Of a stretch of DNA of 64,000 nucleotides, positions 5,216 through 58,380 are shown piece after piece (position 1 is the first letter of the stretch; each line of letters opens with the position of its first letter). Both the position numbers and the translations under genes were made by a program. The DNA comes from Scyliorhinus canicula (Eukaryota), in contig NW_024056013.1 of the NCBI RefSeq assembly GCF_902713615.1, forward strand, positions 560,773 to 624,772. Direction: 5' to 3'. Under the pieces are notes generated by a model that worked only from the letters and a program-made list of their open reading frames with translations, was not told the DNA's origin and searched no databases.

Positions 5216-5657
5216 CCTGATAAATTAGGTATTCCCTGTACCAATCAGTTTCCCAGTCCACCTCAGACAACTTGCCCCTCATAACCTGATAGTTTCCTTC
5301 TGTGAGGAACACCCAGATAAACAAAAGAACCATGTAACCACCAGGGCCCATCTCCATGGCAACGTGGCACGCTTTGGAGGGTTTGAAACAGAAATGGAAA
5401 GAACATATCTTCACATTTGCAAACACCCTTCCACTCTTGTGATCCTTGTGCAATTTGAAGCCAGGTACCAGCAACAAGGCTCAAAGAGCATCAGCCCACT
5501 GGAGGCAAAGTGGTGAGACCGGCCAGTCCAGCAGAAAGAAACCCTCCGACCATCCCCACTGACCACCTGTCAGAATGAACAAAATGCAGTCCTGGATGTA
5601 GAGCGGAAACAAAACAGCAGAATCCAACCCCTGTAATCAATTGTGAAATTGTTGGTA

Positions 5658-6750
<1,093 letters not shown>

Positions 6751-7225: not shown

Positions 7226-7440
7226 AGTAGCACAGTGGTTAGCACTGTTGCTTCACAATTCTAGGGTCCCAGGTTTGATTCCCGGCTTGGGTCACTGTCT
7301 GTGCGGAGTCTGCACAGGTCCCCATGTCTGCGCGGGTTTCCTCCCACAGTCCGAGGACATGCAGGTTAGGTGGATTGGCCATGCTAAATTGCCCCTTAAT
7401 TGGACAAAATGAATTGGGCACTCTAAATTTATTTTAAAAA
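7226..7440 (+). mobile_element. HE1-like SINE, short tail variant
   Basis: GCACAGTGGTTAGCAC A-box, GGTTTGATTCCCGG B-box, shared core. Confidence 0.85.
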
Positions 7441-21233: not shown

Positions 21234-21622
21234 TCATTGACATGAATTAACGGTGTCCATCAGAGCGAGGGAAATGTTCACAAAACTGGGTTTACCGCTG
21301 GATTTATTAACCGTTCTGTTGATGATCTTCAAGGGGATGGCTTCATGTCCCACCACACAGGAGTAAGAAGCGCCGCTGGCCCACTCCTCCGCTGCAATGG
21401 ATAACAGGCTGTACATGAAGAAGGAGCTATTGCCGTTCCGCCATCACCTCGGTGTTCTTGTAGTTGCCGGGATTCACCGGCTTGTCATTGACGGTCCACT
21501 TGACGAAGATCTCTCGGGGGAGAAACCTCTCACTAAGCAGCTGAGGGAGGCGAATCTCTGAGCGGAGACGTCTTCAGCCGAGGGCAGGAGGACAGAGACG
21601 GACGGTTCCCGCGGATTGGGAT
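21234..21622 (-). pseudogene. IGHM: IgM Cmu4 plus secretory tail (..[19 protein letters not shown]), with -1 and -2 deletions
   Basis: [36 protein letters not shown]; [13 protein letters not shown]; tail with N-glycosylation site and penultimate Cys; internal TM donor G/GTAAAC at 21296; frame breaks near 21517 and 21440 give a premature TGA. Confidence 0.93.
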
Positions 21623-21929
21623 CTGCAGAAATGTACATAAATGTTAATAAAATGGGGAATTCCGGGAGACAATGGAACCGCGGGTTAGATGTGAGAGAAA
21701 TGTGTTTTGTGTTGGATTTTAAAGGTTTCCATTTTCCACTTTGGGATCTGTCCGGGTTCCCAGCTCGGAGCAGAGGTGGCACAATCCTTTTCCCTGAGAC
21801 TTTACGGATATTGAATTTGAAAGTTTCAGAAAGTATACAGCAGGGAAACAGGCCATTCGGCCCAACTGTTCTGTGCTGGTGTATAAACTCCACACCTGGC
21901 TCCTCCCACCTTACTCCCAGAGGATTGGA

Positions 21930-23140
21930 AAACTGCCAATGTAACACCCTTATTCAAAGGGGAGGGAGTAAAAAAACAGGTAACAATAGGCCAGTGACCT
22001 GTCAGTGGAGAACGGTGAGAGTCCATTATAACGTTTCTAATAGCTGAGCATTTCAAAATACACCATATAATCAAACAGAGTCAGCAGGGCTTTGTGAAAG
22101 GTAAATCATGCCTGAAAGCTTTATTGCCCTTATTTGAGGTGATAACGAGAAGGCAAGAGAGGGGGGGGGGGGGGGGCAGTAGATGTACTATACATGTATT
22201 TCAAAACTGTGTTTAATAAATGAATGTACTATTCCCATGTTTACAGATGACAAAATATATGTAGAAAGCCAGGTGGTGAGGATTACAGAATATCCACAGA
22301 GGGACAGAGGCAGCTTAAGTTACTGAATAAAAACTTGGCAGATGGAACATAATGTAGGAAAATGTGAGGTTATAATTTGGCAGGAGGAAGAACATAACGG
22401 AATATTATTTACATGGAGAAAGACTGGAGAAAGCTGAAGTAAGGGGGAATTGTGAGTCCTCCTGCAGAAACCACAAAAAGCAAGTTCTGCAGGTAATATG
22501 GAGACAAATTGAATGTTGACATTTATTTCAAACGGAATAGAATATAAACATGGGGAGGTCGAGCTAAAACTATACAAAGCATTAGAGACGACACCTGGTG
22601 TACTTTGAATAGTTTTGGTGCCCTTATCTAAGGAAGACAGATTGGTTTTGAAGGCAGTCCAGAGAAGGATCACGAGGCTGATCCGAGTATGGAGGGAGTT
22701 TCTTATGGGGAGAGTTGTACTTATTGGAGTTTAGAGGAATGAAGGCGACATAATTGAGACATGAAAGATTCTCAGGGAGCTTCTTAGGATAGACGCTGAG
22801 AGGTTGTTTTCCCCTTGTGGGAGCGTCAAGGAGCAGCGTGAATGATCGCAAAATAAGGGTTCGCCCATTTCAGACAGAGATGAGAAGGAATTTCCTCTCT
22901 CAGAGGGTAGTGAAGCTGTGGAATTATTTAACGCAGGGGGCTGTAGATTCTGGGGTGTCAGTATGTCAAGGTTGAGAGAGACATATTTTAAATCAGTAAA
23001 GGCGTCAAGAGATTTGGAGATTAGGCGGGAAAGAGGAGTTGAAGGTTATCACAGCAGATCAGTCATGATCTCACTGAAGGCTGGACCGGTGTTATGGGCC
23101 CAAAGGCCTACATCTGCTCCTAAGTCTTGTGGTCTATAGT
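21930..23140 (+). mobile_element. degenerate CR1 LINE in the Cmu3-Cmu4 intron
   Basis: N.RPV.L, SQQGFVKGKSCL, ADD.K remnants and CR1 3' end. Confidence 0.8.
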
Positions 23141-23261
23141 CTCGCTCCGTCTAAACCCAATATCACTACTTTTAATTCATTGTTCATTCATCTGCATATC
23201 AATTTCCACCTTAAACTCTAAACGCCTAGTTTTTAGTTAGCGGAATTACCTATCTGGATAG

Positions 23262-23555
23262 AGCAGCCCGGTAGCACAAGCCCTTGGCTTGACAACGCCA
23301 GGGTCCCAGTTTCGATTCCCTGCTGGGAGTCTGCACGTTCCCCCCGTGGCTGCGTGGGTTTCCGGGTGCTCCGGTTTTCTTCACATTCTAAAGACGTGCA
23401 GGTTAGGTGGATTGGCCATGCTAAATTGCCCTTTGTGACCAAAAACGTTAGGTGCGGTTATTGGGTTACGGGGATTGGATGGAAGTGAGGGCTTAAGTGG
23501 GTCGGTGCAAACTCGATGGGGCGAACGGCCTCCTTCTGCACTGTATGTTCTAGAC
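23262..23555 (+). mobile_element. HE1-like SINE
   Basis: Shared head, core and tail CTGTATGTTCTA. Confidence 0.85.
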
Positions 23556-23632
23556 TGAATACTAAATATTGACCGCACTGACACTAGAAATAGACACAAT
23601 GGCTCACTTATTGCTTCAGTCTCACGGCTCAC

Positions 23633-23939
23633 CTATGTTTTTGTGAATTGAAATTCTTAAAGGAGTTGGCAGGTCTTGATGGCTCGCCACACAGCAAACA
23701 CAGCCCCACTCAGCCAGGCTTGTGTCGAGATGTTTAATTTGCTGACCACGCTCTCAGTATCTGCCCCAGGCTGGTCGGCAATCTCTGATTTCAGCGGCTT
23801 CTTCGCTTCATCCAGGACACATTGACTCCATAGGGAGCATTCGAAATGACGCAGGTTAAGGTTACAGTCGCCTCCAGTAAGACCTGTTCTATTGGCGGTG
23901 GCAGTATTGTTACTGAGGCATCAGTGCGAACGGAAGGAT
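23633..23939 (-). pseudogene. IGHM: IgM Cmu3 exon with two -1 deletions
   Basis: [71 protein letters not shown]; 307 nt where 309 is expected; AG/GT boundaries intact. Confidence 0.92.
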
Positions 23940-24569
23940 CTGCGAATGAAAAAAAATGGAAATCAACCCAAGTTTCATCTTCAGAATCAGGACAGCAGGA
24001 TTCAGCCTTCACTCAATAAATGGGAATAAATCAACTTCGAAACTTCTAAATATCGCCATTAATCTTTATACACAACGGAAAACCAGTTCGGTCAGTGTAA
24101 ACTATTCTCATTGTGAAATACAATCAGCCCGATGCCATTCTAATGAATCAGTATTGCAGCATTGCCAATACAAATATTCCAGTCCTGATCTCAGGAACCT
24201 AACACTGAAGGCTGATTTATAAATGGGTTGGATGAAATTTCCAACACTTTCGTCCCGGAGCTGTTATCAGTAATGTGTTTCAGACACCCACTGACTCTCA
24301 AATATAACCAGCTGTCTCAGGATAAAGCTGATATCAAGTCCACCTCACTTACTAAATGACTTCAAATTAGAGCGAAACATTTATTTCTATACTGATCAAA
24401 TCCTGAATGGTGAGCAATCCTAATGCAGCTCTTACATCAGAATGAACACAAACTACATGGCAGTAAATTAGAAGTTATTCTGTGCTTGTAATAACTTCAG
24501 TAAATTCCTGATTTTGATTAACATCAGAGTTCAGGATGATTTATTGTTTCCTCTGTTTGTGTCTCTTAC

Positions 24570-24878
24570 CAGACGCGGTGATGTTGTGACTTTGGGTGAC
24601 CTCTTGATGAGTGACCTGGCAGGTATAGACCGCTTTGCTGAACCATTCCCCAGCGGAGACTGTCAGCCGACTGCTCGCCGAGAAGTTCCCGTTCACTTCA
24701 CAGGCGGAAGAGGTGACAATTCGTGAACCCATGGCTTGTCCATTCTTCAGCCAATTCACCGTCATTGAATTTGGCTGGAAATCGTTAATTGAACAGACGA
24801 TGGTTGCAAATTTCTGTCTTGTGATTTCTTCATTCGAACTCACGGTAAGGAAAACATGTGGAGGGACACCAGGCGGGC
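24570..24878 (-). CDS. IGHM: IgM Cmu2 exon, intact
   Basis: [49 protein letters not shown]; 309 nt, phase 1-1. Confidence 0.95.
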
Positions 24879-25077
24879 CTTCAAGAAACACAATTTAGAC
24901 ATTTCTTGCAGAAGATGGTGTGACAAATAAAATGATTATTATATTTTAACAGCTTCTCTGCGGTCAATATTTTCCTCAGGAATCAGAACGGCACACTTTA
25001 CCATAAATATGTTATAGCCAAAGGTTTAAAAAAGTAATCACAGCGGTTCTGCTTCGCACAGTTTCCACAACACTTAC

Positions 25078-36992: not shown

Positions 36993-38883
36993 AGTGACAA
37001 TTATCTCACTATCCAAATACAAATGACATTGAAGAAATCATACTGTTGCGGCTGCACAGAAAAAAATGTAATAACCGGATACATAAATTGCCAAACTGCA
37101 ATGTTAAACTCCTATTTAAGCAACTGACAAACATAACCAGGATTATAAAAATTAATTCAAAATATATTGAGCAATAGAACACTGCTGTAGAATCAGTATG
37201 TTATTATGAAAACATTTCCGGGCATAATCACAAACCATTTCCAGCGTAGAAACTTTTCCGGTGATACTAATGGTGTACAGAGCACAGGAGATCTGTGAAA
37301 GGCGATTGTGATTAATGTTATTAATATGGAAACATCTATGGTTAATATGGAGTTATATTACCGCATTATAATTATTTTAATTATATTAATGTTACTCTCC
37401 AATTGGAACATTGTAATTAAGTAGTTTGAGATTGCAGTAACTGATTGCGTTCTGAATTAATCCAATGATTGCTTAAATCCAGAATGAACAGTTAAAATTT
37501 TAAATAAGCCTCAAAATATCTAGAATTTCTTTCTTCATTTCCGAAACCTGTATATTCTCCCGACAATCGTGTTTCAAGCAGATTCAAACATGTGGACTGT
37601 TGCATGTAATCAGAATACGTGTAACCGCTTAATGCCACCAAGTATAAACAATACAGAAACAATGCAGTAAGCCAATCCACTTCACAAATTGGACTTATTG
37701 AAAGTCACCCAGACACAAAATCGCCTCAGCAGGAAAACACCAAAACTCATCACGAAGGGACTGAAGCCCATTTCAGCTCAATTCTACATTGAACACAATC
37801 GAACATATCATTTCAAAAACATCTCAATATCGAATCCAGCAAATCAGCTCGCCAGCAAATGTATCAAACTAAAGAGAAATATGGAATAATAGCAAAACCA
37901 TTGTAAGGCGGTGCAATAGGTCCAAAAATTATATTTAAACTTCACCACATTTTACTCGTATTGGGCCATATTTGAAACGTATTTCGACACTTCTTGTTTG
38001 CAGTAGATGGTAAAAGCTGCAAACAGCAGGTGACATCGGGATGAAACATTACAGAAAAGCTAAGCTCTTATTGCAGGAAGAAATTGTGTTCGGAAAGAGC
38101 GTCTTAAACCGTGCCTTTGTTAAATCTGCAACCACCACTTATTAAAAATGCGCTAATATCTGTAAGTCGGTGCCCGCAATCATGCTTGAAGCATATTCAA
38201 ACACGTAGACTGTTTGTATTCAACCACAAAGCATGTAAGCGCTCAATGTGACCGAGTTAAACAATGCAGAAACGCCAAACCGTTTCACAGATTTTCCTTA
38301 TTCAAAGTCACCCAGACACAATCTGCTCAGCAGTAAAACACCAAATCACATAGCGAGGGACTAAAACTGGTTTCACGGAGAAGCAGCTCAATACTACAAA
38401 CACTTTCAACAAAACCATAGAGCATTTCAAGACAACATCAATGTGGAACACACCAAACCCCCTTGTCATCAAGTGAATGAATAGTTAAACTAAACCGAAA
38501 GTTAATACTGAGTTAGATTTCAACTACTTGTGCACTAGAAGCTGAAATTTACAGCCACTAAATGTCAGCGAGATATAATATTACAGGAACGTCATACTGA
38601 TTTATAGACGGTAGGTACTTAAAGTAACCCGACCACACAGTATCCTCAGCAAATAAACATCAACTCGCAACAACCAGGGACTGAATCCCTCGGCAGAAAC
38701 CTTTGTCAACAGGCACAGTAATTCTATAACCCTTTTCGGCAGAATCACATGAAACATTGCAACAAAATCTCAATACAGAGTCCTCCAAAGAATATTTCAG
38801 TGAACGAATGAATTGTTGAAATAGAAAGAAAATAACACAAAGACTCAAATATATCAGTTAGTGAATTATTGAATGGTTCTTAC

Positions 38884-38931
38884 CTGCAGTCACTGTCACC
38901 ATGGTTCCTTTTCCCCAGAATACGAAGGCGC
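38884..38931 (-). CDS. IGHJ: IgH J segment AFVFWGKGTMVTVTA
   Basis: WGxG motif; donor G/GTAAGA in phase 1 matches Cmu1. Confidence 0.96.
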
Positions 38932-38970
38932 CACAATGTTTCATTCCCTGGGCTGCACCTTGCAATAACC
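38932..38970 (-). promoter_or_regulatory. J 23-RSS
   Basis: CACAATG (38932-38938), 23-bp spacer, GCAATAACC (38962-38970). Confidence 0.88.
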
Positions 38971-39298
38971 GGATCTGCACAAAATAGACAGAAATCCGCC
39001 ATTATTTTAATATTCACAAACCAGAGACAAAGTTAAGTCACGGTGAATTTGTGTTAAATTATAATGACATGTGTGGATAGCGTTCGCTTTTCATAAATTA
39101 TCCTTCCGGTTTATATTTCAGAGTAGTGTTTCATGAACATGTTGTTGAAAACACTCACTGATTAATGAATAATTATCAGATTTTCCATGTTCATTCTTTG
39201 TATTTGGGCAGTGATGGAAATAAATAATACTTCACTGTAAATACATTTAAATTGTAAAAGAGGGCACTGAGCCAGCCTCAGTGAATTAGTGCTGAGGG

Positions 39299-39362
39299 GC
39301 TTTTTGTATTGACAGTAACTGCTGTGCTAGTTATCACAGTGAGACACAGCGTGTCAAATACT
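39299..39362 (-). other. IgH D segment ATAACTAG (39327-39334) flanked by 12/12 RSS
   Basis: Plus strand: GCTTTTTGT-12-TGCTGTG [CTAGTTAT] CACAGTG-12-TCAAATACT. Confidence 0.9.
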
Positions 39363-39664
39363 GCAGCAGACTGTTAACTGTAAAATACAGAGACTTAATT
39401 TCACTGCGCTCTCAAAAACCGAACTCTGTCTCTTCCAACAGCGAATGGGTGAGTTATTTCAGCTTGTCCTGGTCATTCCATTTATAAAGAGGATCGGAAC
39501 ACTTTTAAACCATCTGTGCAGATTTAGCGTGTCGGTCAACAGAGATAAAGTGGAAGATCTTTTACATCTTTTTACAAACTAATGTTTTGTTTTTTTTAAA
39601 CCTGATTTACATTGACAACCCTGCTGTGGCGCTGATCACACATCTGAACAAACTCTTTCTCGAA

Positions 39665-39702
39665 GATTTTTGTATGAGGATGTCGCTGAGCACAGCACTG
39701 TG
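39665..39702 (-). promoter_or_regulatory. 22-bp RSS 3' of VH (probably the RSS of a joined D1)
   Basis: CACAGTG-22-ACAAAAATC on minus. Confidence 0.9.
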
Positions 39703-40021
39703 GGCCCCTGCAGTGATCTGCTTGCACAGTAATAAATGGCGGTGTCTTCAACCTTCAGGTTCGTCATGGACAAAGAGAATATATTGTTTGAAGTGTCCCT
39801 GGACGCAGTAAATCGATCTTTAATTGCTGGGGCGTAGCTGTTGTCTGATGAACTCATGTAGTTAAGCAGCCACTCCAGCCCGTGTCCGGGAAATTTTCGG
39901 ATCCAGTACGTGTTGTGGCTGCTGAGGTCGAAGCCGCTGGTTTTACAGGTCAGTGTCAGGGAGCCTCCGGGACGCCCGGTCTCTGCCTCCGGCTGAGTCA
40001 ACACAACCTGCGACTGGACAC
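39703..40021 (-). CDS. IGHV: IgH V exon, open frame, with extended 3' end
   Basis: [88 protein letters not shown]; acceptor TTTTTACAG. Confidence 0.96.
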
Positions 40022-40113
40022 CTGTAAAAATATATCAAAAAGCCCGAGGATTAATGCTGGTGAAATGATTGGTGACTCTGGAACATTCCAGAGAGAGAGT
40101 AACACTGAGAGAC

Positions 40114-40452
40114 TTAGAACAATACAGCACAGAACAGGCCCTTCGGCCCTCGATGTTGTGCCGAGCAATGATCACCCTACTCAAACCCACGTATCCACCC
40201 TATACCCAAAACACAACACCCCCCCCCCCAAAACCTTACTTTTTTAGGACACTACGGGCAATTTAGCATGGCCAATCCACCTAACCCGCACGTCTTTGGA
40301 CTGTGGGAGGAAACCGGAGCACCCGGAGGAAACCCACGCACACACGGGGAGGACGTGCAGACTCCGCACAGACAGTGACCCAGCCAGGAATCGAACCTGA
40401 GACCCTGGAGCTGTGAAGCATTTATGCTAACCACCATGCTACCGTGCTGCCC
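40114..40452 (-). mobile_element. young full-length HE1-like SINE in the VH leader intron
   Basis: Intact A/B boxes; tail near-identical to copies at 34233 and 50378. Confidence 0.92.
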
Positions 40453-40478
40453 CCACTTGGACAATAAAAACTACTCAC

Positions 40479-40524
40479 GGGATAAGAAAGTCAGCAACAA
40501 ACTGAGAGAAATGACCAGCCTCAT
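40479..40524 (-). CDS. IGHV: VH leader exon MRLVISLSLLLTFLS(R)
   Basis: 46 nt, hydrophobic, donor C/GTGAGT in phase 1. Confidence 0.93.
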
Positions 40525-40612
40525 CCTTCTGGCCATTTGGGGGAAATGGTTGTGTCAGGAACTCAGTGAACAAACCAGCGCCCGGACTGTTGGATTCGGG
40601 TCCCAGTGAGCG

Positions 40613-40682
40613 GCATTTAAATACCCGGCAGAAGGGGGCGGCTTTCCAGGCGCTGCCTGTTGATTCTTTGGTGGAGGCGGCA
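40613..40682 (-). promoter_or_regulatory. VH promoter: TATTTAAA and GC boxes
   Basis: Minus TATTTAAAT about 90 nt upstream of the ATG; GGGGCGG near 40635 and GGAGGCGG near 40673; no octamer seen nearby. Confidence 0.55.
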
Positions 40683-52446: not shown

Positions 52447-52755
52447 TGTCCCAGAAAGCGCAGTAATACACGGCAGTGTCAGTCAGCTTCAGCCTCGATA
52501 TACTTAAACTGATGAATTTCTTCGAGGTCTGGAGATCCACAGAGAAACGATCTTCAGCAAAATCTGCTTTATATTCATCATCATCAGAATCTTTGCTGAT
52601 TATATATGTGGGCTGTGTGTCTGGGTGCTGTCGGTACCAGAGTAAGCTATAGCTGTTCGATGCAGTATCATAGGTACAGTTTAAAGTCACCCTTCCTCCT
52701 TCTGTCTCAACGTCCGAGGAAAACGGCTGAGTGACAGAATCTCCGTGACTCAGAT
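52447..52755 (-). CDS. TRAV/DV: TCR alpha/delta-type V exon (gene 1)
   Basis: DLSHG/DSVTQPFSSDVETEGGRVTLNCTYDTASNSYSLLWYRQHPDTQPTYII..DRFSVDLQTSKKFISLSISRLKLTDTAVYYCAFWD; CTY, WYRQ and YYC typical of V alpha/delta; open frame. Confidence 0.9.
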
Positions 52756-58091: not shown

Positions 58092-58380
58092 GGCTCTATC
58101 GCACAGTAATACACAGCGGTATCCGCAGTCTCTGTGTTTTCAATAACCAATTGGCCCCGTTTATCCGCAGTAGAAAGTTCCAATTCGAATCGACCCCCTG
58201 TCTCTTTTCCAGCCGATATTCGCCTTATTATCCACTCCAGCCCCTTACCGGACTTTTGTCTGTACCAATACATTCCGTATATGTTGGACATGTCGTAGCT
58301 GCAGTTTAGCTGCCCCAAATCCCCGTTCTGAACTGTTCTTGCAATGGGACTTTGTAAAACTTGTTCCGAGCGACATCGCC
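58092..58380 (-). CDS. TRAV/DV: TCR alpha/delta-type V exon (gene 2), short CDR2 type
   Basis: RCRS/EQVLQSPIARTVQNGDLGQLNCSYDMSNIYGMYWYRQKSGKGLEWIIRRISAGKETGGRFELELSTADKRGQLVIENTETADTAVYYCAIE; open frame. Confidence 0.88.

Follow-up and report, generated by a model that had tools for sequence, protein, structure and literature searches.

The 64,000-nucleotide stretch of Scyliorhinus canicula DNA analyzed here (hereinafter the window) carries on its minus strand a shark-type IgM heavy-chain minicluster comprised of a leader, a V exon, a single 12/12 D, a JH and four Cmu exons. Very probably this cluster originally had the V-D1-D2-J-Cmu arrangement and its V and D1 segments were joined in the germ line. 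Such a join would have excised the 23-RSS of the V, the V-D1 spacer and the 5' 12-RSS of D1 exactly, leaving behind a coding joint and the 3' RSS of D1 with its 22-nt spacer. This footprint would be that of a RAG-type V(D)J coding joint formed in a germ cell and now inherited, and the cluster would represent a one-join-done (VD-D-J) intermediate fixed in the genome. A germline-joined V-D1 had been proposed in an initial annotation of the window, and that reading is upheld by the D1-type RSS and its flank, by a free D1 from the same species and by the occurrence of the identical junction in other samples. The elements of the cluster are as follows:

near 40614-40624, minus strand: conserved TATA-like promoter block, 5' of the leader exon
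40479..40536, minus strand: leader exon, MARRMRLVISLSLLLTFLS
40022..40478, minus strand: leader intron with GT...AG borders, 457 nt, lengthened by a SINE
39726..40021, minus strand: VH exon through the second Cys codon (Pfam V-set, E = 1.4e-16)
39703..39725, minus strand: V tail of 23 nt, GCAAGCAGATCACTGCAGGGGCC, from the Cys codon to the heptamer
39665..39702, minus strand: RSS after the V tail, with heptamer CACAGTG at 39702-39696, 22-nt spacer at 39695-39674 and nonamer ACAAAAATC at 39673-39665
39363..39664, minus strand: first intersegment DNA, 302 nt, D1-D2 type by spacer alignments to bamboo shark
39299..39362, minus strand: free D (D2) with its RSSs, ATAACTAG at 39334-39327, 5' 12-RSS at 39362-39335 and 3' 12-RSS at 39326-39299
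38971..39298, minus strand: D2-J intersegment DNA, by alignment to the bamboo-shark D2-J spacer
38884..38970, minus strand: JH with its 23-RSS, the RSS at 38970-38932 and the JH at 38931-38884, AFVFWGKGTMVTVTA, followed by a splice donor
21234..25376, minus strand: Cmu exons overall (Pfam C1-set)
25376-25078, minus strand: Cmu1, 299 nt, one frameshift
24878-24570, minus strand: Cmu2, intact
23939-23633, minus strand: Cmu3, two frameshifts
21622-21234, minus strand: Cmu4 and secretory tail, two frameshifts

The V exon is of the VH type, has a split leader and lies in the same orientation as the D, J and C elements. Its nearest relatives in protein searches are VHs from catshark and bamboo shark with 74% identity, and its matches in the PDB are antibody heavy-chain V domains. 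The 240 nt upstream of the leader could be aligned with three bamboo-shark VH promoters with a mean column identity of 73%. The JH translates to FWGKGTMVTVTA, which carries the sequence WGKGT corresponding to the WGxGT motif, and beyond its splice donor four C1-set exons recognized by the Pfam model are found ~13.5 kb downstream, the last of them with a mu-type secretory tailpiece that matches Ig heavy constant mu chains (E ~1e-24). Five apparent frameshifts remain in these exons; the V, leader, splice sites, RSSs, JH and Cmu2 are all intact. The SINE in the leader intron (~40100-40450), which was identified by eye only, has further copies dispersed across the window, and an ORF of tandem C2H2 zinc fingers (366 aa, no frameshift) is present on the minus strand at 5573-6670.

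A scan of positions 38800-40100 for RSSs recovered a single free D (ATAACTAG), whose two RSSs both have 12-nt spacers, in addition to the 23-RSS of the JH and one weak hit at 39628 that is probably due to chance. This bears out the single free 12/12 D of the initial annotation, whose estimate of ~350-380 nt for both the V-D and the D-J gaps also proved close: 361 nt separate the heptamer behind the V tail from the D coding sequence, and 395 nt separate the D from the J coding sequence. Instead of the two free Ds of the V-D1-D2-J arrangement, namely D1 (12/22) and D2 (12/12), the cluster thus has a single free D of the D2 type, with D1 being present solely as a remnant fused to the V. In paralogs from the same species the D2 reads ATAACTGGGG where the window has ATAACTAG, indicating that the free D of the window is a shortened D2. 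Two of the three frames of this short D2 contain stop codons.

To understand the long V tail we used the bamboo-shark IgM clusters L001 and L003 as unjoined comparators. In both of them only 9 nt lie between the second Cys codon of the V and its heptamer, after which come a 23-nt spacer (AGAGGAGCC...) and the nonamer TCAAAAACA. In the window, where the second Cys codon is at 39728-39726 (minus strand), exactly 23 nt (39725-39703) separate it from a perfect CACAGTG heptamer, just as the initial annotation had counted. The D1 of the bamboo-shark clusters is ATACTACAGTGGGT or ATGCGACAGCGGGT, followed by CACAGTG, a 22-nt spacer (TTGTGCATAGCGACATCCTCAT) and the nonamer ACAAAAACC or ACAATAACC. Each of the comparators is defective elsewhere: L003 has a degenerate V heptamer (CGCAGCG), and L001 (~7289-7330 against 7197-7430 of L003) shows a ~190 bp deletion at an AGCT microhomology, with loss of the 3' part of D2 and its 3' RSS.

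The 23-nt tail can plausibly be split into a V end, GCAAG (39725-39721), a junction, CAGATC (39720-39715), and a D1 remnant, ACTGCAGGGGCC (39714-39703). Of the division originally suggested for this tail, into V, CAGATC and D1, the overall composition stands as plausible, in that the last 12 nt match a free D1 of the catshark, ACTACAGTGGGT, at 8 of 12 positions when anchored on the heptamer (binomial p = 0.003). The exact borders of the V end, the added bases and the D1 would have to be fixed against an unjoined ancestor of this very cluster. The remnant differs from the canonical D1 at the remaining 4 of the 12 positions, which include both of the bases adjacent to the heptamer. The V and D1 coding sequences are contiguous with no RSS between them; a search of the 23-nt tail for a remnant of an RSS or a heptamer found none, and the reading frame is open through it.

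The RSS that follows the tail, and the DNA behind it, are of the type found 3' of D1 rather than that found behind a V. The 38-nt RSS of the window matches the two bamboo-shark D1 3' RSSs at 34/38 and 33/38 positions, as against 17/38 and 14/38 for the bamboo-shark V RSSs, and its 22-nt spacer has the length seen in D1 as opposed to the 23 nt of the V. In local alignments evaluated against shuffled sequences, the 302 nt behind this RSS are strongly related to the bamboo-shark D1-D2 spacers (z = 17.9 and 17.7) and are indistinguishable from chance with respect to the V-D1 spacers (z = 0.8 and -1.2) and the D2-J spacer (z = 0.9). The D-J spacer of the window in turn is related to the bamboo-shark D2-J spacer (z = 6.4), with scores of only ~0.5-0.8 against the other two spacer types. 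Given the D1 3' type of the RSS and the D1-D2 and D2-J types of the two spacers, what the cluster lacks is precisely the RSS of the V, the V-D1 spacer and the 5' RSS of D1, with the D1 3' RSS, the D1-D2 spacer, D2, the D2-J spacer and J having been kept.

A comparison within the species points in the same direction. A contig from the sequencing run X5 matches the RSS of the window with at least 95% identity up to position 39702, beyond which it reads ...CACTGTG ACTACAGTGGGT (in the minus-strand reading); it carries a free D1 and the heptamer 5' of it, both from a paralogous catshark cluster. In this run the RSS region has a multi-copy depth of 78-89, versus ~5 for unique DNA, as is to be expected of an element common to many clusters. 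The retention of the D1 3' RSS proposed in the initial annotation is therefore corroborated, and the finding that would have spoken against it, a spacer of the VH type, did not emerge from the comparison with bamboo shark.

These observations bear on the process by which the V and D1 came to be fused. Both RSSs have been removed to the base and both coding ends kept within a few bases. This clean excision fits RAG-type processing of the joint; the GATC at the junction is a 4-nt palindrome, which might conceivably be a P addition, though its value is suggestive pending an unjoined ancestor. Alternatively, an ordinary deletion of ~350-430 bp, arising by end joining or slippage, could have brought the V end to the start of D1 by chance without the V(D)J recombinase. 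Deletions of this kind do befall such clusters, as seen in the non-RSS deletion that removed the 3' RSS of D2 in bamboo-shark L001, and the origin of the junction bases CAGATC is unproven. However, a random deletion would require two breakpoints that each fall within a few bases of a coding/RSS border, and what is found is the absence of both RSSs to the base with no heptamer remnant, coding ends kept within a few bases and, as a weak further pointer, the palindrome that P addition would give. Hence, we regard an ordinary deletion as improbable. A search of the window for head-to-head heptamers, i.e. a signal joint as a trace of re-inserted excised DNA, yielded 0 matches.

It might also be asked if there was ever a join, because a primordial cluster with a single D and a V that is extended at its 3' end and has a 23-type RSS of its own would satisfy the 12/23 rule by itself in the layout V(23)-12 D 12-(23)J, and the V is indeed rather divergent, with 74% identity to the nearest known VH. 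However, the spacer of the RSS, the length of that spacer and the 302 nt behind it are of the D1 3' and D1-D2 types and not of the V type, and the tail resembles D1 over its final 12 nt. On account of this D1-type RSS and flank we reject a single-D cluster with a long V end, to which we would accord hardly any probability.

Returning to a germline V-D1 join, its proposed consequences follow from the segments that were kept. By the 12/23 rule two joins would remain to be made, namely VD1 to D2 and D2 to J, and given this rule and the intact RSSs the cluster is predicted to be capable of rearranging further. The start of its CDR3, A-S-R-S-L-Q-G (less any trimming), would be hard-wired and the diversity of one junction lost. 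We infer from the form of the joint that RAG was the agent of the V-D1 join, and any function that the cluster might have is likewise putative.

Joins of the same form are also made somatically. VD-D-J intermediates are frequent in the thymocytes of the nurse shark and occur in its B cells (PMC2435157), and the tissue from which the assembly was made is not given; accordingly, the fusion could in principle be a somatic intermediate from lymphocytes of the sequenced animal that was caught in the assembly. We addressed this by aligning contigs of other sequencing runs to positions 38850-40040. The stretch is present in runs of the probable source sample as well as in runs of other samples and studies. 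A 236-nt contig from X5, which is from another sample and another study, covers 39541-39776 with 0 differences at a depth of 5.7, compared to 5.1 for a neighboring unique contig of the same run. A 164-nt contig from X7, which belongs to a third study, covers 39653-39816, also with 0 differences. Altogether, the identical junction is found in at least three samples besides the probable source, at the depth of unique sequence, and additionally in RNA contigs of a further study. The label 'DNA' for the X5 and X7 samples was guessed by the tool, and their tissues are not given. An identical junction present at single-copy depth in unrelated samples implies that it resides in inherited DNA, and the junction is neither private to one animal nor confined to a minority of cells. 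Independent somatic joins, by contrast, would vary in sequence and be rare among cells. Since contigs from two other samples and two other studies agree with the window at every base across the join, in one case at the depth of neighboring single-copy DNA, and the RNA contigs concur, the somatic origin that the initial annotation had named as a possible refutation is rejected and appears scarcely credible.

The contigs also provide evidence for transcription of the unrearranged gene. A 301-nt contig from the run X6, with a depth of 14, begins within the V (39829), crosses the join and the entire RSS as far as 39660, and resumes at 38974 to read through the J RSS and the JH to 38884, followed by 40 nt that lie outside the aligned stretch. 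Of these 40 nt, 30 were compared with the start of Cmu1 and 29 of the 30 match. As the JH is here joined to the start of Cmu1, X6 must be a run of RNA, and it shows that the gene is transcribed in its unrearranged form, with splicing to Cmu1. A similar share of the words of the stretch is present in four more runs, namely X8-X10 from the study of X6 and X7 from another study.

In the X6 contig exactly the 685 nt that lie between the two 23-type RSSs are skipped; the gap opens 5 nt past the first nonamer and closes 4 nt short of the second. It is bounded by GA...AG, where the acceptor is good and the donor departs from GTAAGA by one base. The skip may be due to splicing at non-canonical sites, to the splicing of an allele whose donor is GT, or to an allele from which D2 has been deleted. 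The resultant product is in frame from the V through both RSSs into the JH and Cmu1. This raises the prospect that the unrearranged VD1-D2-J gene is expressed without recombination as a heavy chain having a fixed CDR3 of ~45 residues encoded by the signals themselves, which we consider a long shot. If the 685-nt skip proved to be spliced out regularly, or to be fixed as an allele, and if the chain is actually produced, this would amount to a RAG-independent route from a split gene to an immunoglobulin chain. A protein search that covered lengths of 56-178 aa retrieved nothing closer than 74%, and neither this V nor CASRSLQG was seen in any deposited protein or repertoire entry.

The apparent frameshifts in the Cmu exons are relevant to whether the cluster is a pseudogene, which it would be if they were real. 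Four of the five look like the loss of one base, and the second one in Cmu4 is either a gain of one base or a loss of two; at most one of the five sits in a homopolymer. The conserved Cys and Trp residues are all retained, and stop codons occur only where the frameshifts create them. In a k-mer look-up of 61 nt centered on the frameshift in Cmu1, which sampled only 2 words, no run was listed, including the runs of the probable source, which contain the V region completely. The missing matches at this point hint at an indel in the assembly. The pattern as a whole may fit indels from unpolished long reads in multi-copy exons at least as well as it fits a pseudogene. The bamboo-shark loci L001 and L002 stop before the C exons.

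Upstream of the IgM cluster the window contains two TCR alpha/delta-like V exons on the minus strand, at 52457-52735 and 58100-58360, which have a WYRQ motif, a V-set domain and RSS spacers of 23 and 22 nt. They lie 12 and 18 kb from the cluster in the same orientation. Catshark IgM clusters are known to adjoin TCR alpha/delta V genes (PMC12227049), and the presence of these two genes is explained by this linkage of the IgH and TCR alpha/delta loci in catshark. An assignment of the fused V itself to TAILV/VH-delta, i.e. an Ig-type V in a TCR alpha/delta array, is rejected on account of its own D2, JH and Cmu and of the transcript spliced to Cmu1.

IgH clusters that are joined in part or in full in the germ line have been on record for cartilaginous fish since 1988, with VD, VDD-J, VD-DJ and VDJ forms in the horned shark (Kokubu et al. 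1988, as related in PMC2193156 and PMC5192425), and the partly joined ones are covered in reviews (PMC5192425). As far as the horned-shark IgM clusters are described in these sources, the cluster in the window resembles them in having a V fused to a D in inherited DNA, in the clean excision of the RSSs and in the RSSs that still flank the segments left unjoined. It differs from them in being a different cluster from a catshark in which only the first of three joins has been made; for this cluster, comparison with unjoined clusters shows that the retained RSS and its flank stem from D1. In its configuration it is identical to the somatic VD-D-J ('1R') intermediates of the nurse shark (Malecek et al. 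2008, PMC2435157), in which V and D1 are joined and the D1 3' RSS, D2 and J are untouched; those, however, arise in single lymphocytes and are not inherited, whereas the junction in the window is common to several individuals at single-copy depth.

Other sharks furnish related arrangements. Three of them, L002 (6440-6510) and P0006 of the bamboo shark and P0001 of the cloudy catshark, look like germline VDD-J genes in which codons derived from D precede the 12-RSS of D2, and P0007 of the whale shark looks like a VDJ with every join made. Like the V of the window, all four are V exons of the IgM type in which D-derived codons follow the Cys; unlike it, they are one or two joins further along, the gene in the window still retaining the RSS with the 22-nt spacer and a free D2. 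A more distant parallel is offered by the VH pseudogenes of the chicken, in which a germline fusion of V to D has been read as RAG action in germ cells (PMC2193156). These pseudogenes lack an RSS, leader and promoter and act as conversion donors, whereas the gene in the window has a promoter, a leader, an RSS and its own D2, J and Cmu.

The cluster is a further example of the partly pre-joined antibody genes recognized in sharks since 1988, and taken alone it alters no current view. It adds to them a well-documented case, in terms of the junction, the type of RSS, the homology of the flanks and the presence in several individuals, for the V(D)J recombinase acting in the germ cells of sharks and reshaping their antibody loci.
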